Part shown: positions 2,173 through 33,660 of the stretch, one piece after another | Position numbering within the stretch: position 1 is the stretch's first letter | Layout of the letters: the number at the start of each line of letters is the position of its first letter | Assembly: GCF_963921235.1 (NCBI RefSeq) | Contig: NC_086101.1 | Span: forward strand, 15,748,001-15,812,000 | Length of the DNA stretch: 64,000 bases | Reading direction: 5' to 3' | Source of the DNA: Mobula hypostoma | Taxonomy: Eukaryota | Program-made: the position numbers and the translations under genes | Notes under the pieces: generated by a model | The model's input: the letters and a program-made list of their open reading frames with translations, nothing else | Databases searched by the model: none | What the model was told of the DNA's origin: nothing

Positions 2173-2502
2173 GTGTGTGACTCACTGTCAGCCATACACC
2201 TTCTCCGATTTCCTCGCCAATCCCATTTATCTGTACTTTGCAGAAGTACATTCCAGAATCGCTCTCCCTCACATCCACCAGCTTAATGGAAGCTTTGAAG
2301 GAATCCTCCTGGTCAGGCCCAAGGACGCGCCCTGCAAACTCTGCTGTCCCGCTGGAGACTTCGGATGTGTTCCTGTACCAGCTGTAGAACACGGTGTCTC
2401 CAGAGTGATTGGCATTATGGCTACAGACCATGAGGACCGTTTCACCCTCACCTGCAAATATACTGGACTGGCCTTGCGTAACCGTGAAGCTCTTGCTTTT
2501 TC
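2173..2502 (-). CDS. NCR3: NCR3-like V exon, duplicated copy V1
   Basis: 330 nt, phase 1-1, EVSSGTAEFAGRV and DSGMYFCKVQINGIGEEIGEGVWLTV; lies inside ORF 2141..2527. Confidence 0.88.
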
Positions 2503-2749
2503 CTGCAATGGGAAAGGAGAAAGTCAATGCTTCCCGTTTGAAAGATGGCCACTGAGGTGAGAATTAAGGCCCAGTGTTAAAGACTGTACAGATTCAACAT
2601 TTGAGATTGTTTGTTGTCAATCGTCAGTACAAGAGTTTAAAGGAGGATGAAATCATTGTTTCTGCAGTTCTGATGCAACATTAAAAAGAGACAATAAGCG
2701 TAAAAACATAAAAAAAATACACCCATCCTATAAATCACAATGTACAAGT

Positions 2750-3385
2750 AACTGTAAAGTGGCGGTGCATGGGAAGGGTGCTGAGGGGATGTGGAGAGGA
2801 GTGGCTGATGTGGATGTAGTGCTGCTGGGGTGCGTTAATGGTAGAGGTGTTGATCAACCTGATAACACTGGGGGAAGTAACTGACTTTCTGTCTATTCGT
2901 CCTGGTATGGTGATGCATAGCCTCTTCCCTGATGGAAGCAGGACAAACAGTCCATGAGTAAGGTGGGTGGGATCTTTCATTGATTACTGGCCTTTTCCTT
3001 GCACCTTTCTGAACGTATGTCCTTGATGGCAGGTGGATGAAGCTGGGGATGTGTTGGGCAGGTTTATCCAGCCATTGTGGAGTCTCTGTGTCTGCCGCAG
3101 TGCAGATCCATACCACGCAGAGATGCAGTATGTTAGGATGCTCTCTACTGCAGTGGTGTTATAGCAACAACCTTGAACTCAACAACGGTTACACTAATAG
3201 ACTGATTGTGGACTTCAGGAAGGGGAAATCAAGGGAGGATAGACCAGTCCGCATTCAGGGATTGGAAATGGAAGGTGTGAGAAATTTCAGTTTCCAGTGG
3301 ATCTATTCTGAGATCAACCTATTGATGCAATTCCAAAGAAGGCACAACAGCGGCTATAGTTCATTTGGAGTTTCATAAAATTTGT
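2750..3385. mobile_element. Rex1/Babar-like LINE 3' fragments, duplicated with each unit (also about 5960-6620, 8130-8456, 15830-16010)
   Basis: HTRT..KNSYFPQ-like and WC..NNLELN..KT..L.VDFRK-like translations, typical of the Rex1-clade ORF2 C-terminus. Confidence 0.7.
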
Positions 3386-4089
3386 TATGTCACTAAAGAC
3401 AATGTGCATTGTCCAGGTCTCTGCACAGGTCACAGGTCCCTGTGAAATGGAGATCCCAGTGAGGGAGTATTACACTCTCTCTCTGAGTTGCATGGAGTAT
3501 CTTTCCTGTATCTGGGATGTCATCCCAGGGTGCAGTCTTCACAAAGGGGCTGGCCATTCAGGACAGATGGGATGTGTCTTTATCCCGGGGCTGGAGTGCC
3601 TTGGTAGGGTTGGGTGAGACGGAAGGATACCTTATTGATCCCAAAGGAAATTACTGTGTCACAGCAGCATTACAAGTAAACAGATATAAATATTGGAAGA
3701 GAGGTCGTAAGAATAAAAATAAGTTACCAGAAACGATCTAACAGGAGGACACCATCACGTCTGCTGCTATATATAGGTTGACTCATCAGAGAGTCTAACG
3801 GCCGAGGGTAAGAATGACCTGATGTCGCACTCTTTGGGGAAAACATGAGCTCTAATAGGCCATTTGGCTCTTCCAGACTGGTGAAGCATGCAATGACATG
3901 GCAGCTGACCTGAAAGTCTTTCATCCCACTGGTGAAATCATTCCTGTCTCTGAAATACACCCCCTTTTCCCAATTCTAGGACAGGGAGCACAGGGAAGTT
4001 GCTCTTCCAATAATTGTATAGGATGACCGAGAGGTGATAAAGTCATTGATCTTTGAATAATATTTATATGTCCCACACTAATCCCATTT

Positions 4090-4195
4090 GAACTTTCAAA
4101 GCCAAGATTGGACTCATAAGTCACTTGAGAGCCCATAAGTAGATCAACAGAATGAAGACCATCACCCTTGACCTCGAGGGATAGCCACGACGATG
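4090..4195 (+). mobile_element. 106-bp 5'-truncated non-LTR retroposon fragment with 13-bp TSD
   Basis: actaatcccattt at 4077-4089 and 4196-4208; single copy (empty site) in the paralogous unit near 6829-6841; ends in an acgacgatg tail. Confidence 0.7.
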
Positions 4196-4209
4196 ACTAA
4201 TCCCATTTA

Positions 4210-4400
4210 TTTTCCCTTTAATTCTCCTGTTAACCGTTCCACCTCCCTCTTTCAAATCCACCCAACTACTACCACTTCCCCAAACACGAGAGCAATTTTC
4301 AGCAATCAATTAAGCCACCAACCCACACGTCTTTGTGATGTGAGAGGAAGCCAGAGCACCCAGCTTTAGGGGTTGGCCACACCATCACAAGGAGAATCCA
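4210..4400 (-). mobile_element. V-SINE/HE1-like SINE fragment (paralogous copy about 6845-7040; another about 34140-34300)
   Basis: Minus strand gggtgctctggcttcctctcacatcacaaagacgtgtgggtt resembles the conserved V-SINE core. Confidence 0.6.
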
Positions 4401-4412
4401 TTAAGATTAGGA

Positions 4413-5125
4413 TAGGACAGTGTGTGACACACTGCCCCACCGGGTCCCAGAGGGGGAAGAGGATAGTGTGTGACACACTACCCCACAGTGTCCCAGAGGG
4501 GGAAGAGGATAGTGTGTGACACACTGCCCCACAGGGTCCCAGCGGGGGAAGAGGATAGTGTGTGACACACTGCCCCACTGGGTCCCAGAGGGGGAAGAGG
4601 ATAATGTGTGACACACTGCCTCACCGGGTCCCAGAGGGGGAAGAGGATAGTGTGTGACACACTGCCCCACTGGGTCCCAGAGGGGGAAGAGGATAGTGTG
4701 TGACACACTGCCCCACTGGGTCCCAGAGGGGGAAGAGGATAGTGTGTGACACACTGCCCCACTGGGTCCCAGCCTGAGAGAGGACAGTGTGTGACCTACA
4801 CCCCACAAGGTCCCAGAAGGAGGAAAAGGACAGTGTGTTACACACTGCCCCATTGGGTCCAGGAGGGGAAGAGGGTAGTGTGTGCCTGACTGCACCACCT
4901 CGACCCAAAGGGGGAGAGAACAGCTTGTGACACACTCTCCCACCTGGTCCCAACATGAGAGAGGAGGGTGTGTGACTCACTGGCCCACCTAGTCTCAGAG
5001 GTAGGGAGGAGAGTGCGTGACCCTCTGCCCCACGGGGTCCCAGATGGGGGAAGAGGACTGTGTGACACACAGTCTCACCTGATCCCAGCGTGAGAGAGGA
5101 CAATGTGTGACCCAGTGCTACTGTT
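4413..5125. repeat. 46-bp minisatellite (aggatagtgtgtgacacactgccccactgggtcccagagggggaag), about 8 near-perfect plus about 7 degenerate copies
   Basis: Units recur at 4459, 4505, 4551, 4597, 4643, 4689 and 4735. Shorter degenerate arrays lie at about 1680-1915, 7047-7300 and 14735-14995. Confidence 0.92.
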
Positions 5126-5383
5126 CTATAATCTGCACATTGAGCCAGTCATTGTCATGGGTTGATAAGTGTGTGATCTCCAGCCAGTAACCCCAATGTA
5201 ATTCTTCTTATCTGTAGTCTCCCATCTACATTCAACAATGGTCATCCGGTCCCATTGGTGACAACACTGGAAGTGAAGGCAGGAAAGCAGACAGGGCTCC
5301 ACGAGTAGAAAGTTGATGGGGGTGGGTGGGTGTTAGTGGGTGGTAATAAGCTCAGTATTGTGTCGTGCTGGGGAACCACTCAC

Positions 5384-5713
5384 CTGTGTGACTCACTGTC
5401 AGCCGTACTCCTTCTCCGATTTCCTCGCCAATCCCGCCTATCCGTACTTTGCAGTAATACATTCCGGAATCGCTCTCCCTCACATCCACCAGCTTCATGG
5501 AAACTTTGAAGGAATCCTCCTGGTCAGGCCCAAGGATGCGCCCTGCATACTCTGCCGTCCCGTTGGAGACTTCGGATGTGTTCCTGTACCAGCTGTAGTA
5601 CACGGTGTCTCTGGAGTGATTGGCATTATGGCTACAGACCATGAGGACCGTTTCACCCTCATCTACAAATATACTGGCCTGGCCTTGCGTAACCGTGAAG
5701 CTCTTGCTTTTTC
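5384..5713 (-). CDS. NCR3: NCR3-like V exon, duplicated copy V2
   Basis: 330 nt, phase 1-1, donor CAG|gtgagt, intact V-set motifs; lies inside ORF 5352..5738. Confidence 0.88.
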
Positions 5714-7559
5714 CTGCAATGGGAAAGGAGAAAGTCAATGCTTCCCGTTTGGAAGTTGGCCATTGGGGTGAGAACTAAGACCCAGTGTTAAAGACTGGAC
5801 ACATTCAACATCTGAGATTGTTTGTTGTCAATTGTGAGTACAAGAGTTTAAAGGAGGATGAAATCATTGTTTCTCCAGTTCTGACGCAGCAGTAAAAAGA
5901 GATAATAGACATAAAACAAATAAATATATAAATATACGCCCATCCTATAAATCACAATGTACAAGTAACTGTAAAGTGACAGGACATGGGAAGGGTGCTG
6001 AGGGGGTGTGGAGAGGAGTGGCTGATGTGGATGTAGTGGTGGTGGGGTGGGTTAATGGTGGAGGTGTTCGGGAACCTGGTAACATTGGGGGAAGTAACTG
6101 TTTTTCAGTCTAGTCATCCTGGTATGGTGATGCATAGCCTCTTCCCTGATGGAAGCAGGACAAACAGTCCATGAGTAAGGTGGGTGGGATCTTTCATTGA
6201 TTACCGGCCTTTTCCCTGCACCTTTCTGAACGTATGTCCTTGATGGCAGGTGGATGATGCTGGGGATGTGTTGGGCAGGTTTATCCAGCCATTGTGGAGT
6301 CTCTGTGTCTGCCGCAGTGCAGATCCGTACCACGCAGTGATGCAGCATGTTAGGATGCTCTCTACTGCAGTGGTGTTACAGCAACAACCTTGAACTCAAC
6401 AACGGTTACACTAGGAGACTGACTGTGGACTTCAGGAAGGGGAAATCAAGGGAGGATAGACCAGTTCGCATTCAGGGATTGGAAATGGAAGGTGTGAGAA
6501 ATTTCAATTTCCTGGGTGTCAACATCACTGTGGATCTATTCTGGGCTCAACATTTTGATGCAATTCCAAAGAAGGCACAACAGCGGCTATAGTTCATTCG
6601 GAGTTTGAGGAGATTTGTTATGTCACTAAAGACAATGTGCATTGTCCAGGTCTCTGCAGCTTCCCTGTGAAATGGAGATCCCACTGAGGGAGCATTACAC
6701 TCTCTCTCTGAGTTGCATGGAGTATCTTTCCCGTATCTGGGATGTCATCCCAGGGTGCAGTCTTCACAAAGGGGCTGGCCATTCAGGACAGATGGGATGT
6801 GTCTTCGAATAATATTTATATGTCCTACACTAATCCCATTTATTTTCCCTTTAATTTTACTGATAAACGTTCCTCTCTCATCTTTCAAATCCACCCAATT
6901 TCTGCCACTTCCCAAAACGCTGGAGCAATATTCAGCAACCGATTAAGCCACCAACCCACGCGTCTCTGAGATGGGGGAGGAAGCCAGTGCACCCAGGGGT
7001 GGGGGTTGGCCACACCACCACAGGGAGAATTCATTAAGATTAGGATAGGACAGTGTGTTACACACTGCCCCACAGGGTCCCAGTGGTGAAGAGGGTAGTT
7101 TGTGACCGACTGCTCCACCTCAACCCAAAGGGGGAGAGAACAGCTTGTGACCCACTGCCCCTCCCGGTCCCAGAGGGAGAGAGGATAATAAGTGACCCTC
7201 TGTCCCACAGGTTCCCAGATGGGGGAAGAGGACTGTGTGTGACCCACTGTCTCACCTGATGCCAGCGTGAGAGAGGACTGTGTATGACCCACTGACACTG
7301 TTCTATAATCTGCACACTGAGCCAATCATTGTTGTTGGGTTGATCAGTGTGTGCTCTCCAGCCAGTCACCCCAATGTAATTGTTGTTATCTTTAGTCTCT
7401 CATCTACATTCAGCGATGGTCAGCCGGTCCCGTTGGTGACGATACTGGAGTGAAGGTAGGAAACCGGACAGGGCTCCACAAATAGAAAGTTGATGGGGGA
7501 GGGAGGGTGATGGTGGTGGTAATAAGCTCAGTGTTGTCTCAGGATGGGGAACCACTCAC

Positions 7560-7889
7560 GTGTGTGACTCACGGTCAGCCGTACTCCTTCTCCGATTTCC
7601 TCGCCAATCCCGCCTATCCGTACTTTGCAGTAATACATTCCGGAATCGCTCTCCCTCACATCCACCAGCTTCATGGAAACTTTGAAGGAATCCTCCTGGT
7701 CAGGCCCAAGGATGCGCCCTGCATACTCTGCCGTCCCGTTGGAGACTTCGGATGTGTTCCTGTACCAGCTGTAGTACACGGTGTCTCTGGAGTGATTGGC
7801 ATTATGGCTACAGACCATGAGGACCGTTTCACCCTCACCTGCAAATATACTGGACTGGCCTTGCGTAACCGTGAAGCTCTTGCTTTTTC
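7560..7889 (-). CDS. NCR3: NCR3-like V exon, duplicated copy V3
   Basis: 330 nt, phase 1-1, intact V-set motifs; lies inside ORF 7528..7914. Confidence 0.88.
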
Positions 7890-9711
7890 CTGCAATGGGA
7901 AAGGAGAAAGTCAATGCTTCCCGTTTGGAAGTTGGCCATTGGGGTGAGAATTAAGGCCCAGTGTTAAAGATTGGACACATTCAACATCTGAGATTGTTTG
8001 TTGTCAATCGTCAGTACAAGAGTTTAAAGGAGGATTAAATCATTGTTTCTCCAGTTCTGACGCAGCATTAAAAAGAGACAATAGGTGTAAAACACATATG
8101 TATAAACCCATGCTATAAAACACAATGTACAAGTAACTGTAAAGTGACAGTGCATGGGAAGGGTGCTGAGGGCTGTGGAGAGGAGTGGCTGATGTGGATG
8201 TAGTGGTGGTGGGGTGGGTTAATGGTGGAGGTATTGATCAACCCGATAACATTGGGGTTAGTAACTGTTTTTCAGTTTAGTTGTCCTGGTATGGATGCTG
8301 CATATCCTCTTCCCTCATGGGAGGTGGACAACCAGTCCATGAGCAAGGTGGGTGTGGTCCATCACTGATCTTACTGGCCTTTTCCCTGCACCTTTCTGAA
8401 CATATGTCTTTGATGGCGGGTGGCTAAAGCTGAGGATGTATTTTGCATGTTTATCCTGTTACAAGGTGGGCATTGATGGTGGACCCAAATGCAAGACATA
8501 GACATTGAGTTACTAGGAACAGGACTAGGTTTGTCAAGAAAGCAAGGGAAGAAACGATACTTGACATTGACACAGGCCCTGGACGGAACTAAGATTCAGG
8601 GCCTGGGCTATGACTTGGGCTAGAAGCACTGGACCCGGACGTGGAACTAGGAAGAAGGAGCCTGGACTAGGAACTCAGAACTCTGGAACCAGAGTCTGGA
8701 CAAGGACCTGGAACTCGGGTCTTGGTTGGGACCTGGAACCTGGGTCTTGACCTGGAACCGGAACTCGGGTCCAGGTTAGGACCCTGGACTAGGATCTTGG
8801 CAAGGACAGGACAGGACAAGTTACTCCAGCACAGGACGAGGTAGGCCAGCACCGGGCTGGGCGAAGAACTCCTGGGTTGGGCGAGCCACCAGAACTAGAT
8901 GAAGACACGAAGCTCAGATTTGGATGGGGCTGGAACACGGCGCCTGGACTTGGTCTTAGAACTCAGGAACACAGAGCCTTGGACGTGGACTGGACGCTCA
9001 GAGCCTTGGACATGGACTGGACATTCAGAGCCTTGGACATGGACTGGACGAGGTACTCCAGGGCAGGGCGAGGTACCCTAGGGCAGGACGTGGTTCTTGG
9101 ATGGGGTTTGGCTTGGCTCTTGGACTCGGCTTGGGTTAGGCTCTTGGATACGGAGCCGGGACTCCTTCTTGGAGTGCAGGGCCGGGACACCTTCTAGGAC
9201 GCAGGGCCAGGATGACTGCCGAGGTAAACTGCTGAGGATTCCGATGGGGACGATCCAGCACAGGACGAGAAATCTCCAGCACAGGACGAGAAATCTCCAG
9301 CACCGGGCTGGGTGAGGTACTCCTGGGCTGGAAGAGGCACATGGACTGGAATAGGACACGAAGCTCAGACTTGGACAGGGCTGGAACGCGGCGCCTGGAC
9401 TTGGTCTTGGAACACAGGAACCTAGGAACACAGAGCCTTGGACTTGAGCACAGGACCACAGAGCACAGAGCCGGGACCCCTCCCTGGGGTTAGGACATAG
9501 GGCCGGGACTCGTACACGGAACACAGAGCCAGGACCCCTCCTTGGGAACAGGACTTAGGGCCTGAGGTCCACATGAAACACAGAGTCAGGACCCTTCCTT
9601 GAGAACAGGACCCAGGGCCGGGACTCTTCTTTGACACGGACACTAAACACAGGGCCACAAAGAGACAGTTTCAAACTCAATGATAGATAGTTCCTTATCT
9701 TGGCGTGGCTA

Positions 9712-12700
9712 GAACATAGAACAGTACAGCACAGTACAGGCTGTATGGCCCACAATGTTGTGCCGACCCTTAAACTCTGCCTCTCATATAACCCCCCACC
9801 TTAAATTCCTCCATATACCTGTCTAGTAGTCTCTGAAATTTCACTAGTGCATCTGCCTCCACCACTGACTCAGGCAGTGCATTCCACACACCAACCAATC
9901 TCTGTGTCACAATGGAGGCTTTGGGAATGGACCTAAATGCAAGACACAGACACTGAAGTACAAGGAACAGGACTTGACTAGAGTAGGGACGTGACAGGAT
10001 TCAGACCAGGAGCAGGGACAAGAAAACAGGCTTGGGCTAGGACATGGACTAGACACAGGGAACCCGGACAAGGAATTGTGAACTAGGAGCCTGGGCTAGG
10101 ACTCCAAGCCAGAGACTGGACAAGGACCCAGGACCTGGGTCTTGCCTCGGGCTCGGACCCCAGAACCAGGCAGGGACATGACATGGCTACTGGACAGGAC
10201 GTGGCTGGGGTCTTGGCTCTTGAACTTGGAGACAGGCTGGGGTCTTGGGGCTTGAGGCTTGGAGACAGGCCTGGGGTCTTGGGGCTTGAGGCTTGGAGAC
10301 AGGCCTGGGGTCTTGGGGCTTGAGGCTTGGAGGCTGAGGTCTTGGGTCTCGAGGCTTGGAGGCTGGGGTCTTGGGTTTCGAGGCTTGCAGGCTGGGGTCT
10401 CGGGTCTTGAGGCTACAGGCTGGGAGCTGGGGTCTTGGAATGCGAAGGCTGATAACTCAGACGCTGGAGCTCGGAGACAGACTGGGAACTGTACATCAAT
10501 AGAGAGCTGGGACTTATCCTTAGAAAAGCCAGGAGTCATCTTTAACTCGACACTAACTTGAGACTGGACTGTACATAGACATAGAGCCGGGACTCATCCA
10601 TAGACAAGCCGGGACTCAACTTTATCTCCACACCAAGGTGGGACAGGTCAACCTGCTGGGTAACGGCAGAACGGCCGGACTTACCCAACAGAGGCGAGGA
10701 CAAGACAAGACAGATCCCCCGCAGGGCAACGGCATAACCTCCTGACTTACCCCATGGAGGCAAGGACAAGACAAGACAGGACCCCCTGCAGGGCAACGCC
10801 AGGATGGCCTGACTTACCCCACGGAGGCGAGAACAAGAAGAGACATACACCAAAGAATGACAGACAGTTCCATCTCTGCTTCGGGGTTGCTCTGAGTCGC
10901 AGTTTCAGCCAGCAACCTCAGCTGGCGACGGAAACAGCCGGATCCCTACCTAGCTCGGAGTGGCTGGCAGCCACTCAGCTGGCCTGGGAAACAGACGAAT
11001 CCATACCGCAAAGACGGCCCCGACTACCGTTAGCAAGGTTCCATGAAGCGATGGTCTCCAACAAGGCCTAAAGATGACAAGTGGCCGCTCTAGCCTTCCA
11101 CCGGCAGGTTGCTCCCAGGGGATCCTGACAAGACAAACCAGCAGCCCACACTCAACCCCAAGGCTACTTGTATTCCAAGCCCCAAGATGGGAATCAGGTG
11201 CCTATGATTAACTCAAACAAAACAAGGGACAGCTGGAAGACCCGGAGTCCTGAGTCCACGGACTGGACCGTGAACCGGAACGTGACACTCTGAGTGAAAA
11301 GCCTTCCTCTAATATCCCCCTTGAACTTCCCACCCCTTACCTTAAAGCATGTTTTCTTGTCTTGAGCAGTGGTGCCCTGGGGAAGAGGCACTGTCTGTTC
11401 ACTCTATCTATTCCTCTTAATATCTTGTATACCTCTATCATTTCTCCTGTCATCCCCCTCCTCTTCAGAGAGTAAAGCCCGAGCTCCCTTAATCTTTGAT
11501 CATAATGCATACTCTCTATACCAGGCAGCGTCCTGGTAAATCTCCTCTGTACCCTTTCCAATGCTTCAACATCCTTCCTATAGTGAGGCAACCAGAACTG
11601 GACACAGTACTCCAAGTATGGCCTAACCAGGGTTTTATAGAGCTGCATCATTACATCGCGACTCTTAAACTCTATCCCTCGACTTATGAAAGCTAACACT
11701 CCACAAGCTTTCTTAACTACCCTATCCACCTGTGAGGCAACTTTCAGGGATCTGTGAACATGTACCCCCAGATCCCTCTGCTCCTCCACACTTCTGAGTA
11801 TCCTGCCATTTACTTCGAACTTTGCTTTGGAGTTTGTCCTTCCAAAGTGTACCACCTCACACTTCTCCAGATTGAACTCCATCTGCCACTTCTCAGCCCA
11901 CTTCTGCATCCTATCAATGTCTCTCTGCAATCCTCAACAATCCTCTACACTATCCATAACACCACCAACCTTTGTGTTGTCTGCAAACTTGCCCACCCAC
12001 CCTTCTACCCCCACATCCAGGTCGTTAATAAAACTCACAAAAAGTAGAAGTCCCAGAACCGATCCTTGTGGGACACCTCTAGTCACAACCCTCTAATCCG
12101 AATGTACTCCCTCCACTATGACCCTCTGCCTTCTGCAGGCAAGCCAATTCTGAATCCACCTGGCCAAACATCCCTGGATCCCATGCCTTCTGACTTTCTG
12201 AATAAGCCTACCATATGGAACCTTGTCAAATGCCTTACTAAAATCCATGCAGATAACATCCACAGCACTACCCTCATCTAGATGCCTGGTCACCTCCTCA
12301 AAGAACTCTATCAGGCTTGTTAGACATGATCTGCCCTTCACAAAGCCATGCTGACTGTCCCTGATCAGATCATGATTCTCTAAGTGCCCATAGATCCTAT
12401 CTCTAAGAATCTTTTCGAACAGCTTTCCCATCACAGACGTAAGGCTCACTGGTCTATAATTACCTGGACTCTCCCTACTACCTTTTTTGAACAAGGGGAC
12501 AACATTTGCCTCCCTCCAATCCTCCAGTACCATTCGCGTAGACAACGAGGACATAAAGAACCTATCCAGAGGCTCAGCAATCTCTTCCCTCGCCTCATGG
12601 AGCAGCTAGGGGAATACTCTGTCAGGCCCCGGGGACTTATCCGTTCTAATGCATTTTAATAACTCCAACACCTTCTCTGCCTTAATATCAACATGCTCCA

Positions 12701-13470
12701 GAATATCAACCTCACTCATATTGTCCTCACCATCATCAAGTTCCCTCTCATTGGTGAATACCAAAGAGAAATATTTATTGACAACCTCGCTCACTTCCGC
12801 AGGCTCCAGGCACATCTTCCCACCTTTATCTCTAATCGGTCCTATCTTCACTCCTGTCATCCTTTTGTTCTTCACATCATCGAAGAATGCCTTGGGGATT
12901 TCCTTTACCCTACTCGCCAAGGCCTTCTCATGCCCCCTTCTGGCTCTCAGCCCCTTCTTAAGCTCCTTTCTTGCTACCCTATATTCCTCAATAGACCCAT
13001 CTGATCCTTTCTTCCTAAACCTCATGTATGCTGCCTTCTTCCACCTGACTAGATTCTCCAGCTCACTTGTCAACCATGGTTCCTTCATCCTACCATTCTT
13101 TATCTTCCTCACCGGGACAAATTTATCCCTAACATCCTGCAAGAGATCCCTAAACATCGACCACATGTCCATAGTACATTTCCCTGCAAAAACATCATCC
13201 CAATTCACACCCGCAAGATATAGTCTTATAGCCTCATAATTTTCCATTCCCTAATTAAAAATTTCCTGTTCTCTCTGATTCTATCCTTTTCCATGATACT
13301 GCTAAAGGCCAGGGAGCGGTGGTCACTGTCCCCCAGATGCTCACCCACTGAGAGATCTGTGACCTGACTCGGTTCGTTACCTAATACTAGATCTAGTATG
13401 GCATCACCCCCAGTCGGTCAGTCAACATACTGTGACAAGAATCCATCCTGGACACACTTAACAAACTCTG
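9712..13470 (-). mobile_element. CR1 LINE (about 2.4 kb of ORF2 3' part, split by the solo LTR)
   Basis: ORFs 11337..11930, 12093..12554 and 12606..13247 with CR1 RT motifs (SQHGF.KGRSCLT.L, DFSKAFDKV); aacatagaac tail near 9712. Confidence 0.9.
9905..11287 (-). mobile_element. Solo LTR of the same Gypsy-like family
   Basis: TGTCA...TGACA termini; 5-bp TSD ctctg at 9900-9904 and 11288-11292; flanks rejoin into continuous CR1 3' sequence. Confidence 0.8.
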
Positions 13471-15254
13471 CCCCGTCTAAACCATTGGAACTAATCAGGT
13501 GCCAATCAATATTAGGGAATAAGGCTCCTGTTTCACTTCGGCGGTTGAATTTGACGAGAATGCAGGTGAAGCTTCAGAAGGAAGGAGAAGGGAAGAGTCC
13601 AGCAAAAAACAATCCCTGGTTTTCAGATGTCTTTATGTGCCAGACCGAAATGAGAATCAGGTGCATCAATTAAGGCACCCAACAGAACAAGGGAGAAAAC
13701 TGGAAAACCCAGAACAAGGATCGATGGACCGGACCGTGAACCAGAATGCGGATTTCACGGACCGGATCATGACAGTACCCCGCCCACCCCATCAATGGGA
13801 GCCTCCTTGCGAACCAAAAGGCTATGGACTACACGGGCGGGTGGTTGGGGGCATTCAACAGGATGGAACCCAGGATTTTGAGAGTAAAATGACAGTGTCT
13901 GTGTCCCTGGGTCCATGCTTGACTGGACTATTCTGTCATAAGGGGGTGGGCGTTGATGGTGGACCCAAATGCAAGACACAGACACTGAAGTACCAGGAAC
14001 AGGACAAGGTGTATCAAGAAAGCAAGGGGTGTCAGGAAGAAACAACGCTGGACATGGACACAGGACCTGGATGAGACAGGGACACCAGGCCTGGTCTAGG
14101 ACTAAGACTGGAAACATGGGACCCGGACGTGGAACTAGGATCAAAGAGCCTGGGCTAGGACTGCAAGCCAGAGACTGGACAGGGACCCGGAACCTGGGTC
14201 TTGCCTTGGGCTCAGACCCAGGATCTAGGTGAGGACGAGACGTGGCTACAGGACTGGACGTGGCACTCCTGCACAGGACGAGTCAAATGGACAGGACGAG
14301 AACACAAAGCCTTGACTTGGACAGGACGAGGTTCTTGGACATGGCTTGGACAGGACAAGGTTCTTGGACGTAGCTTGGACAGGATGAGAGACTCCTGGAC
14401 AGGATGAGGGAACTCCAGCACTGGGCTGGGCGAGGAATCTCCAGCACAGGATGAGGAATCTCCAGCACAGGACGAGGAATCTCCAGCACAGGACATGGCT
14501 CTTGAACTAGATTTGGCTCTGCTCTTGCACTCGGCTTGGTTAGGCTTTTGGGTATGGCGCCGGGACTTCTCCTTGGATGCAGGGCCGGGACACTTTCTAG
14601 GACGCAAGGCCAGGACGACTGCCGAGGATTTGGATGGGGGCGATCCAGCACAGGACGAGGAATCTCCAGCACCGGGCTGGGCGAGGTACTCCTGGTCTGG
14701 GCGAGGTACTCCCAGGCGTGTCTGGTCCCATTGTGAGAGAGGACAGTCTGTGACCCACTGCCCCACAGGGTCCCAAAGAGGGAAGAGGATAATGTGTGAC
14801 CCACTGCCCAATTGGGTCCCAGAGGTGAAGAGAATAGTGTGTGACCCACTACCCCACCCGGTCCCAGAGGGAGAGAGGATAATAAGTGACCCTCTGTCCC
14901 ACAGGGTCCCAGATGGGGGAAGAGGACTGTGTGTGACCCACTGTCTCACCTGATGCCAGCGTGAGAGAGGACTGTGTATGACCCACGGCCACTCTTCTAT
15001 AATCTGCACACTGAGCCAGTCATTGTTCATGGGTTGATAAGTGTGTGATCTCCAGCCAGTCACCCCAATGTAATTGTTGTTATCTTTAGTCTCCCATCTA
15101 AATTTGGTGATGGTCAGCGGTCCCGTTGGTGATGACACTGGAACTGAAGGTAGGAAACCAGACAGGGCTCCACGAATAGAAAGTTGATGGGGAAGGCTGG
15201 GTATTAGTGGGTGGTAATAAGCTCAGTATTGTCTCGGGCTGGGGAACCACTCAC

Positions 15255-15584
15255 CTGTGTGACTAACGGTTAGCCGTACTCCTTCTCCGATTTCCTCACC
15301 AATCCCGTCTATCTGTACTTTGCAGTAGTACATTCCAGAATCGCTCTCCCTCACATCCACCAGCTTAATGGAAACTTTGAAGGAATCCTCCTGGTCAGGC
15401 CCAAGGACGCGACCTGCATACTCTGCCATCCCGTTGGAGACTTCGGATGTGTTCCTGTACCAGCTGTAGAACACGGTGTCTCCAGAGTGATTGGCATTAT
15501 GGCTACAGACCATGAGGACCGTTTCACCCTCACCTGCAAATATACTGGACTGGCCTTGCATAACCGTGAAGCTCTTGCTTTTTC
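15255..15584 (-). CDS. NCR3: NCR3-like V exon, duplicated copy V4
   Basis: 330 nt, ttgcag|GA ... CAG|gtgagt, open frame GKSKSFTVMQ...VCSH...SWY...EVSNGMAEYAGRV...DSGMYYCKVQIDGIGEEIGEGVRLTVSHT. Confidence 0.88.
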
Positions 15585-19640: not shown

Positions 19641-19861
19641 GAAATACTCAGCATGTTGGGCAGCATCTGCAGGAAGCGAAACAAAGTTAATTCTTGGAGG
19701 GGAAGATCTTTCCTCAGAACGGGGCAAAAAAAAGTTGTTTGCAAGATTCTTCTGTTCTCTTGCTTACCTCCTTTCCCTGCTCTGAGGATGGTCTTGGACC
19801 ATTGGTCTTGGGAGTTGGGTCTGATTCGCACTGACAAGGAGATACTTGATGGTTGACTTAC

Positions 19862-20200
19862 CTGTCACTGTGAGATTCGTCCCCACCCCATATATTTCCC
19901 ATTCCTTAGTCTTTAACTTGCAGAAGTACATCGCAGAATCACTCAGCCGCACGTACTTCAGTCTCAGGGAAACATCTGTGCTGTTAGTGGAGGGATCATC
20001 CCCTTGAGGTCTCAAGAAGCGGTCTCTGTACTCTGCTGTTTCATTGGTCACTTCTGTTCCATTTTGGGCTCCCTTGACCCAGTGGTACGACCATACCTTA
20101 TTCGTGACATTGTGACTGCATGGAATAACCACTGTCTCCCCTTCTGTGGCAACAATGCTGGACTTGTCCTGACTGACCACAAACTTCTCAGCACCAATGC
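19862..20200 (-). CDS. NCR3: Divergent NCR3-like VJ-type Ig V-set exon (GIGAEKFVVSQ...IPCSH...SYHW...EVTNETAEYRDRF...DSAMYFC...YGVGTNLTVT)
   Basis: Acceptor ccctgctttcag|GC, donor ACAG|gtaagt, 339 nt phase 1-1. Both Ig cysteines, the C-strand Trp, DxAxYxC and a J-like GxGTxLTV motif are present. Confidence 0.9.
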
Positions 20201-24600: not shown

Positions 24601-26045
24601 TCCACCCAATTTCAGGTTTCAAAACTGGGCAGTCAACATACGGTACCTTATGTTTTGGTTATACTACATTAATTGTGAAGACCGTCCGATTTGGGTTTCT
24701 TCAGAAGTTAGTTCTGTTAATAAATTTTCTATTATTTCTCTTCTTGGTTCTTCAATTCCTCTATCTTTAAGTAATTTAACTGATAATTATGTAGTTAAAC
24801 ATTCTTTGAGGATTTGGTTACGATTTAGAAAATCCTTTGGGTTATTTGGTTTTTCACTCTCGAGTCCCATTTTTTCTTATATTTTAAACCTTCTCTGACT
24901 GATGTAGTTTTGAAAGAGTGGAATAGTCCAGGTATTAAATGTTTTCAGGATCTGTTTGTTGAAGATAGTCTTTCCTCATGTGATCAACTATCTATTAAAT
25001 ATAATCTTCGTAAAGCTCACATTTTTTTTAGATATTTACAAATTAGAGACTTCTTGCGTTCTCAACTTCATACATCTCCTAAATGTCCAGATAAGAGTTT
25101 AATTGATACAATTTTTACTTTGAAACCTTTTCATAATGGATCTGTTTCTAATATTTGTAGTATGTTGTTGGCAATGAGAAAGATTCCATTAGACAAAATA
25201 AAAAACCTCTGGAAACAAGACCTACAGATTTCAATTGATGAAGATTCTTGGAATTGAAGTTTTAAACTTGTTCACACCTCTTCGTTATGTGCACGTCACT
25301 CTCTTTTGCAATTTAAAGTGGTTCATAGAGTTCTCTTGTTTTTACTCAGATTTTGCTCCATACTGTAATAGGTGTAAGGTCGAAGAGGCCTTTCTAATTC
25401 ATATGTTTTGGACCTGCCCGGGACTTGAAAAATTTTGGAAAGAAGTATTTCAAACTTTCTCGGAGCTTTTTAAAGTAAACTTTAAGCCCAACCTTCTGAC
25501 TGCCTTGTTTGGTATTTGTTAGAGGAAATGATTTTACTCTTAAGCTGAATGACTTGCATATTTTGGCTTTTATTTCTCTTTTGGCTAGAAGAGCTTTGTT
25601 GCTCAAATGGAAAGATGCTGCTCCGCCTACTCATGCCCATTGGTTGATTGATGTTATGTCATGTTTAAATCTAGAGAAAATTAGGTGTTCTATTTCTATA
25701 CCTAGGTAAGATCATTTCACATTATGGGGACATTTTGGAACTACTTTCACAATTTTCGATTTGTTCAGCAATGATGATGGCTATTATATGTTTGCATTTA
25801 AGACTGTATGCCAGAGATCTTTTTTCTTTACTTTTAACCAAACAGTTGTTTTCTCTCTCTCTTTTTTTTTGTTTTGTTATGGGGTTTTGATTTTACTTTA
25901 GATTAGAATAAAATATACCTTTTCAATATTATGGTTAATTTACCATACATAGTTATGGGACACTTCAATCTTGTTTCTGTTTCCATAATATCATAATGTA
26001 TTTTGTATTCGTCTTTGCAAGTAATTAATAAAAAAATTTAAAAAG
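21670..26045 (+). mobile_element. L1-clade LINE, 5'-truncated and degenerate (ORF1 C-terminus, T-rich spacer, APE-RT ORF2, A-rich tail)
   Basis: ORF 22625..22936 (LSLNVKGLN...IIFLQETH...DPNGRFVIV) is an APE endonuclease. RT segments PGPDGFSGEFYK, YRPISLLNVDAKILSK and SLDAEKAFDRVEW; Cys-rich HMFWTCP; A-rich end near 26030. Confidence 0.92.
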
Positions 26046-26249
26046 AAACCTGTGTCCTCTTGTGGCAACCATTTCTGCCCTGGGAAAAAGCCCTTGACTA
26101 TCCACACGATCAATGCCTCTCATCATCTTATACATCACTATCAGATCACCTCTCATCCTCCGTCGCTCTAAGGAGAAAAGGCCGAGTTCACTCAACCTAT
26201 TCTCATAAGGCATGCTCCCCAATCCAGGCAACATCCTTGTAAGCAACAC

Positions 26250-26740
26250 ACACAAAATGTTGGTGGAATGCAGCAGGCCAGGCAGCATCTATAGGAAGAA
26301 GCACAGTCGACGTTTTGCCCCCAGACACTTCATCAGGACTAACTGAAAGAAGAGATAGTAAGAGATTTGAAAGTGGGAGGGGGAGGGGCAGATCTGAAAT
26401 GATAGGAGAAGACAGGAGGGGGAGGAATGAAGCTAGGAGCTGGAAAGTTGATTAGCAAATGCGATACAGAGCAGGAGAAGGAGTAGGATCATGGGACGGG
26501 AAGCCTAGGGAGAATGAAAGGGGCAGGGGAGCCTAGAGAATGATGGAGAGCAGGCAAGTAGTGATTTTGAGAGGGACAGAGAGAGAAAAAAGCTAGAAAA
26601 GGGCAGGGGAGGGAGATAATAAATAAATAAATAAATAAATAAGGGATGGGGTAAGAAGGGAAGGAGGGGTACTTACGGAAGTTAGAGAAATCAATGTTCG
26701 TGCCATCAGGTTGGAGGCTACCCAGACCGAATATAACCAT
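26250..26740. mobile_element. Penelope-like terminal-repeat fragment (related fragments about 21230-21420, 34340-34500, 53170-53460)
   Basis: cagcaggccaggcagcatc motif and GSLQPDG.NIDFSNF C-terminus, matching the GIY-YIG elements elsewhere in the window. Confidence 0.65.
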
Positions 26741-28950
26741 ATACCATATAACTATATAACAATTACAGCACGGAAGCAGGCCATCTTGGCCCTTCTAGTC
26801 CGTGCTGAACTCTTACTCTCACATAGTCCTACCGACCTGCACTCAGCCCATAACCCTCCATTCCTTTCTTGACCATATAGCTATCCAATTTTACTTTAAA
26901 TGACAATATTGAACCTGCCTCTAACACTTCCGCTGGAAGCTCGTTCCACACAGCTACCACTCTCTGAGTAAAGAAGCTCCCCCTCATGTTACTCCTAAAC
27001 TTTAGCCCCCTAACTCTCAACTCATGTCCTCTTGTTTGAATCTCCCCTACTCTCAATGGAAAAAGCCTATCCACATCAACTCTATCTATACCCCTTATAA
27101 TTTGAAATACTCCTATTAAGTACCCCTTCAATCTCCTACGCTTCAAAGAATAAAGACCCAACTTGTTCAAGCTTTCTCTGTAACTTAGGTGCTAGTAAAT
27201 TTTCTCTGTACTCTCTCTATTTTGTTGAAATCTTTCCAATAATTCAATGACCAGAACTGTACAATTTTAACATTACATCTCAACTCCTATACTCAATGCT
27301 CTGATTTATAAAGGTCAGCATACCAACAGCTTTCTTCACCACCCTATCCACATGAGATTCCATCTTCAGGGAACTATGTACCATTATTCCTAGATCCCTC
27401 TGTTCTACAGCATTCTTCAATGCCCTACCATTTACCATGTATGTCCTATTTTGATTAGTCCTACCAAAATGTAGCACCTTGCATTTATCAGCATTAAACT
27501 CCATCTGCCATCTTTCTGCTCACTCTTCTGACTGGCCTAAATCTCTCTGCAAGCTTTGAAAACCTACTTCATTATCCACAATGTCACCTATCTTAGTATC
27601 ATCTACATACTTACTAATCCAATTTACCATCCCATCATCCAGATCATTAATGTATATGACAAACAACAATGGACACAGTACAGATCCCTGAGGCACACCA
27701 CTACACACCGTCCTCCAATCTGACAAACAGTTATCCAACACTGCTCTCTGGCATCTCCCATCCAGCCACTGCTGAATCCATTTCACTACTTCAATATTAA
27801 TGCCTAACGATTGAAGCTTCCTAACTACCCTTCCATGTGGAACCTTGTCAAAGGCCTTACTGAAGTCCACATAGACAACATCCACTGCTTTACTCTCGTC
27901 AACTCTATTAATAACCTCTTCGAAAAATTCAGTAAGATTTGTCAAACATGACCTTCCACGCACAAATCAGACTACAAATCTGTTCCTAATTAGACCCTGT
28001 CTATCCAGATAATTATATATACCATCTCTAAGAATACTTTCCATCAATTTACCCACCACTGACGTCAAATTCACAGGCCGATAATTGCTAGGTTTACTCT
28101 TAGAACCCTTTTTAAACAATGGAAAAACATGAGTAATTTGCCAATCCTCCGGCACCATCCCTGTTTCTAATGACATTTGAAATATTTCTGTCAGAGCCCC
28201 TACTATTTTCACACTAACTTCCCTCAAGGTCCTAGGGAATATCCTGTCAGGACCCGGAGACTTATGCACTTTTATTTTCCTTAAAAGCGCCAGTACTTCC
28301 TCTTCTTTAATCATCATAGTTTCCATAACTTCCCTACCTTTTTCCTTACCTTACACGATTCAAAGTCCTTCTCCTTAGTGAATACCGAAGAAAAGAAATT
28401 GTTCAAAATCTCCTCCATCTCTTTTGGTTCTGCACATAGCTGTCCACTCTGATTCTCTAAGGGACCAATTTTATCCCTCACTATCCTTTTGCTATTAATA
28501 TAACTGTAGAAACCCTTTGGATGTATTTTCACCTTCCTTGCCAAAGCAACCTCATATCTTCTTTTAGCTTTTCTAATTCCTTTCTTAATATTCTTTTTAC
28601 ATTCTTTATATTCCTTGAGCATCTCATTTACTCCATCCTGCCTATATTTATCGTAGATATCTCTCTTTTCCCGAACCAAGTTTCCTATATCCCTTGAAAA
28701 CCATGGCTCTCTCAAACTTTTAATTTTTCCTTTCAACCTCACAGGAACATAAAGATTCTGTACCCTCAAAATTTCACCTTTAAATTACCTCCATTTCTCT
28801 ATTACATTCTTTCCATAAAACAAATTGTCCCAATCCACTCCTTCTAAATCCTTTCACATCTCCTCAAAGTTAACCTTTCTCCAATCAAAAATCTCAACCC
28901 TGGGTCCAGACCTATCCTTCTCCATAATTATATTGACATTAATGGCATTG
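26740..28950 (-). mobile_element. CR1 LINE ORF2 fragment
   Basis: ORFs 26829..27170, 27280..27504, 27520..27963, 27967..28326 and 28314..28769 with CR1 RT motifs. Confidence 0.9.
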
Positions 28951-29650
28951 TGATATAAGGAGTTGTTCCTCCAACCTGAGTGTGGCTTCATCTTTACAGT
29001 AGAGGAGGCCATGGATAGACATATCAGAATGGGAATGGGACGTGGAATTAAAATGTGTGGCCACTGGGAGATCCTGCTTTCTCTGGTGGACAGAGCGTAG
29101 GTGTTCAGCGAAACGGTCTCCCAGTCTGCGTCGGGTCTCACCAATATATAGAATGCCACACCGGGAGCACTGGACGCAGTATATCACCCCAGCTGACTCA
29201 CAGGTGAAGTGTTGCCTCACCTGGAAGGACTGACTGGGGCCCTGAATGGTGGTGAGGGAGGAAGCGTAAGGGCAGGTCCACTTACAAGGATAAGTGCTGG
29301 GAGGGAGATCGGTGGAAGGGATGTGGGGGGGGGGCGGGCGAATAGACTAGGGAGTCATGTAGGGAGCGTTCCCTGCGGAAAGCAGAGCGGGGAGGGGAGA
29401 AGAAAAGATGTGCTTAGTGGTGGGATCCCGTTGGAGGTGGCGGAAGTTACGGAGAATAATATGTTGGACCCGGAGTCTGGTGGGGTGGTAGGTGAGGACT
29501 AGGGGAACCCTATTCCTAGTGGGGTGGCGGGAGGATGGAGCGTGAGCAGATGTGCGTGAAATGGGGAAGATGCGTTTGAGAGTAGAGTTGATGGTGGAGG
29601 AAGGGAAGCCCCTTTCTTTTAACAAGGAGGACATCTCCCTCGTCCTGGAA
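28950..29650 (-). mobile_element. Penelope-like element, GIY-YIG endonuclease region
   Basis: ORF 28939..29220 (FTCESAGVIYCVQCSRCGILYIGETRRRLGDRFAEH) and 29347..29634 (RVPLVLTYHP...NFRHLQRDPTTKHIF). Confidence 0.9.
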
Positions 29651-30189
29651 TTCCTCGTGTTTACGTCCCCGTGAAAGTATCCTGACTGGTTGCGTCATGG
29701 GCCCACTATGGCAATTGCAACACACAGGAATGCCAGAGGCTGCGGGGAGCTGTGCGTGCGGCTCGGTCCATCACGAACACAGCCTTCCGGCATCTACAGA
29801 AGGCTTGATGAAGGGAAATGCTCTTTCCGTCAATGATGCCTGACCTGCTGAATTCCTTCAGCATTTTGCATTTGTTCATTTACTGAAGCCGCTGCCTCAA
29901 GATTATGGCATCTTTCTTCTATTGTGTCTTTGTTTTCCTTTTGTAGCAAGGTCTTGCTTTTGCACTTGTCTTTTTTCAAATGAATGCTACACTTTTGTGC
30001 CAAATCTATGATTAATTTATATACAGTTTGCTGTCTGTACCTGCGTGCCAGTGATACCGCAGCAAGCATTTCCACTGTGCCTGTACCTCACCGCACTTGC
30101 ACACAACGCGTGACAATAAACTGGAGTTGAAGTCGGTGTCACTTTCTAAAAGTAACTGATGGCCCACTGAAGTCAGAGGCGTTTTTCCT

Positions 30190-30360
30190 TTTTGTAGCTT
30201 GTGGTAGCACTTACGCACTTTTTTTAAAAAACGAGGTCGAGTTGCTAGCTCGACGCTCAACCAGCATGGATGGAAAGCGTGCAAGGAGCTGGCCAGACTC
30301 GAACTCGAAACCATTTGCCTCGAAGTCCGGTGCTGATGCCACGACACCACTGACCTTGGA
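30190..30360 (-). mobile_element. tRNA-derived SINE
   Basis: Minus-strand A-box-like tggtgtcgtgg and B-box-like gagttcgagtc, followed by a non-tRNA body and A-rich tail. Confidence 0.55.
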
Positions 30361-30449
30361 GCCTTCCAAAGCACCCTCTAGGAACGGTGGAGGCAGAGTT
30401 CTTTCATGTTTTTAAGACCGAGGTGCATTGATTCTTGATGAGCAATCGC

Positions 30450-33400
30450 GTGGAATTGAACTTGCAGTCAAACTAAAAATTACTAGACTTACCTCTATTT
30501 TTCTAAGCTGCATGTACCTTTCCAAAAGTCTCTTAAAAGACCCTATCGTATCCGCCTCCACCACCGTTGCCGGCAGGCCATTCCATGCACTCACCACTCT
30601 CTAAGTAAAAAACTTACCCCTGACATTTGCTCTGTACCTACTCTCCAGCACCTTAAACCTGTGTCCTCTTGTGGCAACCATTTCAGCCCTGGGGAAGAGC
30701 CTCTGACTATCCACACAATCAATGCCTCTCATCATCTTATACACCTCTATCAGGTCACCTCTCATCCTCCATCGCTCCAAGGAGAAAAAGCCAAGTTCCC
30801 TCAACCTGTTTTCATAAGGCATGTTCCCCAAATCCAGGCAACATCCTTGTAAATCTCCTCTGCACCCTTTCTATGGTTTCCACATCCTTCCTGCAGTGAG
30901 GCGACCAGAACTGAGCACAGTACTCTAAATGTGGTCTGACCAGGGTCCTATATAGCTGCAACATTACCTCTCGGCTCCTTAATTGAATTCCACGATTGAT
31001 GAAGGGCAATACACTGTACGCCTTCTTAACCACAGACTCAACCTGCACAGCTGCTTTGAGTGGCCTATGGACTCGGACCCCAAGATCCCTCTGATCCTCC
31101 ATACTGCCAAGGGTCTTACCATTAATACTATATTCTGCCATCATATTTGACCTACCAAAATGAACTACTTCACACTTTTCTGGGTTGAACTCCATCTGCC
31201 ACTTCTCAGCCCAGTTTTGCATCCTATCAATGTCCCGCTGTAACATCTGAGAGCCCTCCACACTATCCACAGCACCTCCAATCTTTGTGTTATCAGAAAA
31301 CTTACTAACCCATCCCTCCACTTCCTCATTCAGGTCATTTATAAAAATCAAAAAGAGTAAGGGTCTCAGCACAGATCCCTGAGGCACACCACTGGTGATT
31401 GACCTCCATGTAGAATATGACCTGTCTACAACCACTCTTTGCCTTCTGTGGGCTAGCCAGTTCTGGATCCATAAAACAATGTCCCCTTGGATCCCATGCC
31501 TACTTACTTTCTCAATAAACCTTGCATGGGGTACCTTATCAAATGCCTTGCTGAAATCCATATACACTACATCTACTGCTCTTCCTTCATCAATGTGTTT
31601 AGTCACATCCTCAAAAAATTCAATCAGGCTCGTAAGGCATGGCTTGCCCTTAATAAAGCCATGCTGACTACTGCTAATCATATTATACCTCTCCAAATGT
31701 TCATAAATCCTGCCTCTCATAATCTTTTCCAACAACTTACCAACCACTGAGGTAAGACTCACTGGTCTAAAATTTCCTGGGCTATCTCTACTCTCTTTCT
31801 TGAATAAAGGATCAACATCCGTAACCCTCCAATCCTCTGGAACCTCTCCCGTCCCCATTGATGATGTAAAGACCATCGCCAGAGGCTCAGCAATCTCCTC
31901 CCTTGCCTTCCACATGAGCCTGGGGTACATCTCATCCAGTCCCGGCGACTTATCCAACTTGATGCTTTCCAAAAGCTCCAGCACATCCTCTTTCTTAATA
32001 TCTACATGCTCAAGCTTTTCAGTCTGCTGCAAGTCATCACTACAATCACCAGGATTTCCCACTTTCCCACTTGATAGGTCCTATTCTTTCACGTCTTATC
32101 CTCTTGCTCTTCACATACTTATAGAATGCCTTGGGGTTTTCCTTAATCCTGCCCACCAAGGTCTTCTCATGTCCCCTTCTGGCTTTCCTAATTTCATTCT
32201 GAAACTCCTTCCTATTAGACAATAGACAGTAGACAATAGGTGCAGGAGTAGGCCATTCGGCCCTTCAAGCCAGCACCACCATTCACTGTGATCATGGCTG
32301 ATCATTCATAATCAGTACCCTGTTGCTGACCTCCCCTTATCCCTTGACTCCGCTATCTTTAAGAGCTCTATCTAATTCTTTCTTGAAAGAATCCAGAGAA
32401 ATGGCTTCCACTGGCTTCTGAGGCAGAGCATTCCACAGAACCACAACCCTCTGTGAGAAAATGTTTTTCCTCAACTCCATTCTAAATGGTTTACCCCTCT
32501 GGTTCTGGACTCCCCTAACATCAAGAACATGTTTCCTCCCTCTAGCTATCTAATCCCTTAATAATCATATGTTTCAATCAGATGCCCTCTCATCCTTCTA
32601 AATCCCAGTGTCTACAAGCCCAGTCGCTCCAGTCTTTCAACATATGACAGTCCCGCCATCCCAGGAATTAACCTCATGAACCTACACTGCACTCCCTCCA
32701 TAGAAAGAATGTCCTTTCTCAAATTTGGAGACCAAAACTTCACACAATACTCCAGTTGGGGTCTCACCAGGGCCTTGTACAACTGCAGAAGGACCTCTTT
32801 GCTCCTATACTCAACTCCCCTTGTTATGAAGGCCAACATGACATTAGCTTTCTTCACTGCCTGCTGTACCTGTATGCTTACTATCAGTGACTGATGAACA
32901 AGGACACCCAGATCTCTTTGTACTTCCCCTTTTCCTAACTTGACACCATTCAGATAGTAATCTGCCTTCCTGTTCTTGCCACCAAAGTGGATAACCTCAC
33001 ATTTATCCACATTATACTGCATCTGTCATGCATCTGTCCACTTACACAACCTGTCCAAGTCACCCTGCATTCTCATAACATCCTCCTCACATTTCACACT
33101 GTCACCCAGCTTTGTGTCATCTGCAAATTTGCTAATGTTACTATTAGCCTCATAATTTTCTAGATCTCTAACATTACCCAGCTCTCGGAACCTTTTGTAA
33201 GCTTTTCTTTTCTTGTTGATTAGATTTATTACAGCCTTTGTACACCACGGTTCATGTACCCTACCATAACTTCCCTGTCTCATTGGAACGTACCTATGCA
33301 GAACTCCACACAACTATCCCCTGAATATTTGCCACAGTTCTTCCGTACTTTTCCCTGAGAACATCTGTTTCCAATTTAAGCCTCCAATATCCTGCCTGAT

Positions 33401-33545
33401 AGCCTCATAATTCCCCTTACTCCAATTAAACGCTTTTCTAACTTGTCTGTTTCTGTCTCTCCCCAATGCTACTATAAAGGAGATAGAATTATGATCACTA
33501 TCTCCAAAATGCTCTCTCACTGAGAGATCTGACACCTGACCAGGT
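30450..33545 (-). mobile_element. CR1 LINE with a second CR1 3' fragment (32219-33140) nested inside
   Basis: 416-aa RT ORF 30812..32062; nested ORF 32612..33022; ctattag duplicated at 32212-32218 and 33141-33147. Confidence 0.9.
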
Positions 33546-33617
33546 TCCCGCTTTTCTCGCGCTGCCTATTGCCTTCTCCCCCAAGCTGTAGCCATAAAGG
33601 AACAGAAAGCTACTTAC

Positions 33618-33660
33618 CGGAGGAGACGGTCAGGAGCCACAGAATGGCGCCCACCTCCAT
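33618..33660 (-). CDS. NCR3: Signal-peptide exon MEVGAILWLLTVSS(G) of the NCR3-like gene
   Basis: ATG in strong context (acgATGG), 14 codons + 1 nt, donor CCG|gtaagt, upstream acceptor ctcctctgctttag before 33670. Joined to the 20200 exon it reads MEVGAILWLLTVSSGIGA-EKFVVSQ, a plausible cleavable signal peptide. Confidence 0.8.

Follow-up and report, generated by a model that had tools for sequence, protein, structure and literature searches.

NKp30, the product of NCR3, has one variable (V) domain and a stalk, then a transmembrane segment that contains a basic residue, and its tail is short. Interest in it rests on its conservation as a natural killer receptor and on its non-rearranging VJ domain, which predates the antigen receptors; it is normally a single-V molecule. 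NCR3 has been described as a non-rearranging VJ gene linked to the major histocompatibility complex (PMC12227049). Here we analyse a gene on the minus strand of a 64-kb stretch of the genome of the lesser devil ray, Mobula hypostoma (the whole stretch is called the window, and all coordinates are positions in it), in which one leader exon is followed by five V exons, each V domain being one exon. Our reading, to which we give a probability of about 0.75, is that this is one gene whose phase-1 V exons are spliced serially into a five-domain VJ-type chain of the order A-B-B-B-B, where A and B are two types of V module.

When compared with human NKp30 (3NOI, 3PV6, 6YJP), the ray gene has the same kind of single-exon, non-rearranging VJ-type V domain, and the ray domains have the canonical Cys-Trp-Cys as well as the J-like G-x-G-x-x-L-x-V. 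The two differ in the rest of the chain: the ray gene has five V domains in series instead of one and no transmembrane segment in its public model, and its ray paralogues have a transmembrane segment whose core is uncharged and long tails that carry tyrosine motifs, instead of the basic transmembrane segment and short tail of NKp30. Variation in the number of immunoglobulin (Ig) domains is also found in the MDIRs (modular domain immune-type receptors) that skates possess, which reportedly have one to six domains, as Cannon and colleagues are said to have found in 2006. The MDIRs resemble the present case as a germline family of cartilaginous fish with a variable Ig-domain number, but their domains are related to CD300, TREM and pIgR and not to NKp30 (PMC3031540), and by this description they are set apart from the ray gene.

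Gene anatomy

The exons of the gene, together with the upstream segment that is coding in the RefSeq model, are listed below in the order of transcription.

34035..34067, minus strand: ATG with which the RefSeq model opens and its first 11 codons, upstream of the leader exon, placed by residue mapping
33618..33738, minus strand: 5'-leader and signal-peptide exon; no other leader-like exon in 1-34000 has a good donor
19862..20200, minus strand: V5, A-type VJ-like V exon, 339 nt, phase 1-1, V-set E 6.5e-12
15255..15584, minus strand: V4, B-type copy 1, 330 nt, phase 1-1
7560..7889, minus strand: V3, B-type copy 2, 330 nt, phase 1-1
5384..5713, minus strand: V2, B-type copy 3, 330 nt, phase 1-1
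2173..2502, minus strand: V1, B-type copy 4, 330 nt, phase 1-1, with an intact donor at 2173

The signal peptide is coded by 33660-33618 (ATG, 14 codons plus one base) and ends at the phase 1 donor G/GTAAGT; the leader peptide of 14 residues, MEVG...TVSS, is identical in the paralogue P0002. An acceptor CAG/G and a donor GTGAGT or GTAAGT are present on each of the five V exons, stop codons are found in none of them, and all five match the Pfam V-set with E values from 6.5e-12 to 2.5e-13. The pairwise identity among V1-V4 is 93.3-98.5%, with differences at 29 positions and V2 and V3 at the upper end (98.5%), while V5 has about 40-45% protein identity to these B-type copies. The first intron, between the leader and V5, is 13.4 kb long and the introns in the array are 1.8-7.4 kb. 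Since every exon is phase 1-1, all the copies can splice in series.

The original prediction had described one leader exon and five intact phase 1-1 V exons, and every coordinate was reproduced. It had also reported that the repeated units hold no leader, promoter-like block or transmembrane exon, and here the leader scan, blastn and tblastn were all negative. A pattern scan for ATG, a hydrophobic core and a phase-1 GT donor gave no second convincing leader, and blastn gave no leader copy elsewhere, so that a private leader for each V copy was found by neither method. With the transmembrane and tail parts of the paralogues as queries, tblastn found no transmembrane exon for the five-V gene in 1-33600, and a further (sixth) V exon was not found by tblastn across the 64 kb. 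As there is a single leader and no unit has its own leader or transmembrane exon, it was exons and not whole genes that were multiplied, as had been proposed.

The public gene model and the gene ends

An exhaustive HMMER search with V4 found XP_062903898.1, a Mobula hypostoma protein of 602 residues which is named 'polymeric immunoglobulin receptor-like' and has five V stretches. The protein is colinear with the window in the order leader, V5, V4, V3, V2 and V1 (V5 is its residues 52-165), and the five-V chain is thus already modelled in the public RefSeq annotation. RefSeq gives one product for the gene and no isoforms. The gene span is 35,225 nt, which puts the gene's end some 1.1 kb beyond the left window edge. 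Within 10 kb on either side, no further gene is called.

At the 5' end, the model starts 37 residues ahead of the signal peptide, at the ATG at 34067. No canonical GT donor giving the model's first junction (34067-34035 to 33738-33661) was found, and the paralogue P0002 begins at the leader Met; because of these two points, the true translation start is probably the Met at 33660. The segment 34035-34067 would then be 5' untranslated and not coding, and the extension is probably an annotation artefact. A comparable upstream extension is present in the Hemitrygon model.

At the 3' end, the model leaves V1 via an inner donor, ACA/GTGAGT (exon 2502-2186), and ends two residues later ('AN', stop). 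A scan of 1-2186 for the pattern AG/GCN AAY stop was empty, and therefore the model's terminal exon lies outside the window. There is no hydrophobic (transmembrane) segment in the 602-residue model. The original prediction had expected a transmembrane exon left of the window, which is doubtful because the model ends two residues after V1 without such a segment and no gene is called within 10 kb. Since the model lacks a transmembrane segment, the product is most likely secreted, or else anchored by exons not yet modelled.

Splicing of the V exons in RNA

Words of the B exon occur in four RNA-type runs of the same species. These runs are stored as assembled contigs, which were placed on 15200-20250 and 1-6000; the statements on junctions refer to the contigs listed, and such contigs cannot show absence. 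In two of the runs (X13 and X25), a contig has a joint, 15583 to 15254, which goes back 330. The X25 contig (253 nt) holds the last 88 nt of V4 followed by 164 nt from the start of a B exon, and the X13 contig (148 nt) holds the last 105 nt of V4 and then 43 nt of the next B exon. The upstream parts of both contigs have zero mismatch to V4, including the V4-unique positions 15265, 15271 and 15298, while the downstream part of the X25 contig has 5 differences from V4, 3 from V2 (5662, 5665, 5678) and none from V3. The joint is the predicted splice 15255 to 7889 at the phase-1 donor, a junction that the original prediction had proposed to seek in RNA. V4 and V3 are spliced into one RNA.

Two technical sources of the joint were considered. 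A back-splice or circular RNA was ruled out because the two contig parts derive from different copies, the downstream part having V3 and not V4 letters. A de Bruijn (k-mer) chimera is unlikely, as the 3' end and the 5' start of the exon have no long word in common and the joint is seen in two runs. For V1, an RNA contig of 146 nt matches 2314-2459 with no mismatch and with V1-specific letters. Letters specific to V4, V3 and V1 are therefore all present in RNA contigs. Together with the architecture of XP_062903898.1, the V4-to-V3 junction supports the suggestion that up to five V domains are encoded.

The same contigs bear on the reading that the locus is a set of separate single-V genes with private leaders, or that an assembly artefact has inflated one V exon to four. 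No support for either was found. There is no leader, promoter copy or transmembrane exon in the repeat units, the copies differ at their 29 positions with the copy-specific letters recovered in RNA without mismatch, and the V4-to-V3 junction connects two distinct copies. Separate genes were rejected for the lack of a private leader or transmembrane exon and for this junction, and we give next to no credence to the reading as a whole.

They also bear on a mutually exclusive choice as in Dscam, by which exactly one B exon, or one of the five V exons, would enter each mRNA. As in the Dscam arrays, tandem similar Ig-domain exons lie in one gene, and this array-like layout behind one leader, and nothing more, speaks for such a choice. 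A Dscam array contributes one exon per mRNA, whereas the neighbouring copies V4 and V3 are joined in one RNA contig in two runs; in addition, the paralogues are constitutively multi-V, and introns of 1.8 kb and above leave no steric block to co-inclusion. Mutually exclusive V use, one of the options of the original prediction, does not agree with V4 and V3 in one RNA; in its strict form it is refuted for these two exons, and we consider it very improbable.

Several points weigh against the serial five-V chain. Only one of the six expected junctions (V4 to V3) was seen in RNA; among the contigs listed, the leader-V5, V5-V4, V3-V2 and V2-V1 junctions were not seen, and there was neither a V2-specific letter nor a perfect V5 match. 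Expression is low, with a word depth of about 3-12. The only V5-like contig (X13, 220 nt, on 19865-20053) is 97% identical to V5, with 6 differences, and its 31-nt tail past the V5 donor was not placed on V4; the three differences listed are all synonymous, and the contig may come from the A exon of an unlisted paralogue or from a divergent allele. Finally, the 3' end is uncertain, given a model without a transmembrane segment that ends in 'AN' after the inner V1 donor.

The missing V2-specific letters and V5 match would also fit regulated cassette use, in which symmetric exons are skipped in combinations to give isoforms of graded length with two to five V domains. All the exons are phase 1-1, so that any subset is in frame, and their splice sites are near-identical. 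However, no exon-skipping junctions were seen among the contigs listed, RefSeq has its one product, the isoforms of a related three-V gene in Heterodontus vary in the tail only and have the same V content, and the limit stated above for the contigs applies to the missing letters as well. We regard cassette use as possible but unlikely, and the idea of diversification by exon choice is unsupported. For the serial chain, we infer from the RefSeq model and the paralogue architecture that all five exons are in the main mRNA.

Two further observations concern contigs of other genes. In an X13 contig of 212 nt on 5385-5487, 103 nt are the end of a B exon which agrees with none of the four copies (V2 differs at 4 places), and a further 109 nt lead onto sequence absent from 1-6000; it is most likely the junction from B to the transmembrane exon of a paralogue. 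Other B-type letters in the contigs were considered as alleles, and this was rejected since they fit the paralogues LOC134346461 and LOC134346462.

Domain type and family relations

When the B domain was compared with solved structures by phmmer, the top matches were NKp30 (9fww, 3pv6 and 3noi; E 6e-8), level with pIgR, but the pIgR match is confined to a stretch of 43 residues (query 54-96). An AlphaFold model of the B domain, with a predicted local distance difference test (pLDDT) value of 90, has NKp30 at Foldseek ranks 1-4 with TM-scores of 0.76-0.81, the best of these matches having a TM-score of 0.81 at 28% identity. The label 'NKp30-type' given in the original prediction is thus apt at the domain level, as the B domain matches NKp30 best among PDB entries both in sequence and in fold. 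For the A domain (V5), the top sequence matches are V domains of antibodies and T-cell receptors and not NKp30. The alignment of V domains has no variation at C26, W41, C87, G99 and L104 and hardly any at G101.

Single-V relatives are found at 37-50% identity, among them QTT61904.1, the NCR3 of the nurse shark, and several proteins of sharks named 'NCR3-like'. The nurse shark protein, which is NCR3 by its depositors' naming, has 38% identity to the B domain (E 5.9e-9), and with the Stegostoma and Heterodontus NCR3-like proteins the range is 37-41%. The ray relatives carry both modules. In M. hypostoma, LOC134346462 is A-B-transmembrane-tail (419 residues, tail motif I-x-Y-x-x-I) and LOC134346461 is A-A-B-transmembrane-tail; LOC132393824 of Hypanus sabinus is A-B, and a Hemitrygon akajei protein and a partial M. 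birostris protein are both A-A-B. The three-V and two-V proteins of Heterodontus and Scyliorhinus are more distant. The five-V gene has in common with its ray paralogues and orthologues the leader, the A and B modules (73-92% identity) and the design of one phase-1 exon per domain. It differs in having four B domains and no transmembrane segment in its model, where they have one B, a transmembrane segment and a tail, with the A exon sometimes doubled.

A tree of 34 V domains places A and B in two clades that contain rays only (support 100/100), and V5 falls in the A clade. The nurse shark NCR3 is a near neighbour, and the same tree also contains the NCR3-like shark proteins. The ray V domains therefore cluster with NCR3 or NCR3-like proteins of sharks and rays, but the retrieved nurse shark protein has a single V domain and 170 residues, and the A and B types are ray-specific. 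By these sequence relations, the five-V gene is a member of a ray-specific A/B branch of the elasmobranch NCR3-like family, whose ground plan would be a leader, A, B, an uncharged transmembrane segment and a tail with tyrosine motifs, including I-x-Y-x-x-I, which is like an immunoreceptor tyrosine-based inhibitory motif. Among the B domains, those of Mobula are separate from those of stingrays, with weaker support for the split, and the species searched yielded no further protein that has more than one B domain. On these two grounds, the array is probably a young amplification of the B exon in a two-V family, within the Mobula lineage.

The public name of the gene calls for a comparison with pIgR. 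Both have five V-like domains behind one signal peptide. On the other hand, the similarity is only local, the ray domains are of the VJ type and NKp30-like, the model has no transmembrane segment or tail, and the nearest relatives are NCR3-like. The name 'pIgR-like' reflects the domain count and not orthology, and the gene does not belong with pIgR. It should be called an NCR3-like multi-V receptor, which is neither NKp30 nor pIgR. No paper on multi-V NCR3-like receptors of rays was found, with the key shark NCR3 paper lying outside the comparison.

One of the paralogues reaches into the window. Four minus-strand micro-exons (63935-63894, 59732-59688, 52648-52616 and 51172-51131) match the cytoplasmic tail of LOC134346461 (P0154) at 100% and include the piece DDLPPPPLEE. 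LOC134346461 therefore ends inside the window, about 17 kb upstream of the five-V leader.

The duplicated unit and its repeats

The core of the repeat unit is the 1.2-1.7 kb around each B exon, including flanking intron. This core and the 46-bp minisatellite that follows in the downstream intron make up tandem units of 3211 and 2176 nt, and a third unit is 7695 nt long because other sequence, including a LINE-like insertion (LINE, long interspersed nuclear element), intervenes. The repeat features that belong to the array are as follows.

4414..5118, no strand assigned: 46-bp minisatellite in the intron downstream of V2, 15.5 copies, the longest version
about 1570-1940, 6885-7325 and 14733-14971: shorter versions of the 46-bp minisatellite, after the other B exons
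11337..13247, minus strand: open reading frames like those of intronic LINE copies, in the V4-V3 intron, which partly explain the 7.7 kb unit

The minisatellite lies directly downstream of each B exon and belongs to the duplicated unit. It may plausibly have served as the substrate on which unequal crossing-over multiplied the B exon. We propose that tandem duplication of a unit of 2-3 kb, consisting of the B exon, its intron flanks and the minisatellite, produced the four copies, most likely through unequal crossing-over and within the Mobula lineage. An exchange is suggested between V2 and V3: 5384-5813 and 7560-7989 are 97-100% identical over about 400 nt, a length that takes in the greater part of the exon and some 100 nt of the intron upstream, while the flanks are 82-90% identical. 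For this reason the tract looks like a short gene conversion centred on the exon.

The remaining repeats are side observations. The minisatellite yields long spurious open reading frames on the minus strand. Repeat families D6, D8 and D11 pair 11343-12471 with 30655-31784, and RVT_1 is found in the related element at 30815-32062, with another RVT_1 match at 27523-27963 and a weak endonuclease match at 22625-22933. LINE fragments occupy 22600-25600 (plus strand) and 26000-33500 (minus strand) in the first intron and 430-1360 (minus strand) at the left window edge; their very high RNA word depth is unrelated to the five-V gene. The V4-V3 intron also has GC-rich tandem repeats at 9457-10845, with periods of 29-34, 57, 67 and 80 nt.

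Selection on the B copies

The synonymous divergence (dS) between the B copies is 0.09-0.12, which is about equal to the divergence of the flanking introns (6-12%). The ratio of nonsynonymous to synonymous divergence (dN/dS) is 0.29-0.46 in most B pairs and 0.68-0.85 in two pairs. There are no indels in the B exons, and gaps occur in the flanking introns in every comparison. No B copy has lost either Cys, the Trp, DSGMY(Y/F)C or the J-like G-E-G-V-x-L-T-V.

These values can be set against the reading that the gene is a transcribed relic, that is, a partial leader-A-B duplicate of a neighbouring receptor gene which has lost the transmembrane segment and tail and is spliced but functionless, its B exon having been amplified neutrally via the minisatellite. 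A transmembrane segment absent from the model and not found in the window, the low expression, the want of another multi-B protein in any species, and dN/dS up to 0.68-0.85 in some pairs all agree with it. However, at about 10% neutral divergence the four copies keep the frame, the exact length, the Cys pair, the Trp, DSGxYxC, the J-like G-x-G and both splice sites; the exons are intact where the flanking introns carry indels; dN/dS is 0.3-0.46 in most pairs; and the branch lengths are not longer than those of the paralogues. The absence of a membrane anchor is also not peculiar to relics, since gene-encoded soluble members are known in comparable families, such as LILRA3 and LAIR2 (PMC3031540). 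We judge the relic reading to be rather unlikely.

Meaning of the five-V gene

In the explanation that we prefer, the V exons would stand head to tail in the mRNA behind the single signal peptide, and the predicted protein would have one A-type domain and four near-identical B-type NKp30-like domains with links of about 7 residues. By analogy with the paralogues, it may be an immune-cell receptor or a decoy, in which the repeated B domains would add reach or avidity. One extension of this explanation is that the B array works as an 'accordion', whose copy number varies between individuals or species via the minisatellite intron and whose exons are variably included. We put it forward tentatively and think it improbable. 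If it were true, a germline NKp30-like molecule, possibly secreted, would exist in graded lengths and valencies, and this would be a recombination-free tuning of avidity, unlike both the single-V NKp30 and the rearranging receptors.

The five-V gene is real, but as a variant within a receptor family already known it is modest. No new mechanism of diversification is seen in it, because RefSeq already models the gene and innate receptor families commonly vary in how many Ig domains they have. Its analysis corrects the misleading public name 'pIgR-like' and points to a possible family member without a transmembrane segment, which would be soluble. In the ray branch of the NCR3-like family there are two V modules whose exons are freely duplicated, giving A-B, A-A-B and, here, A-B-B-B-B, and the case shows the ease with which multi-V chains can be built from phase-1 VJ exons.

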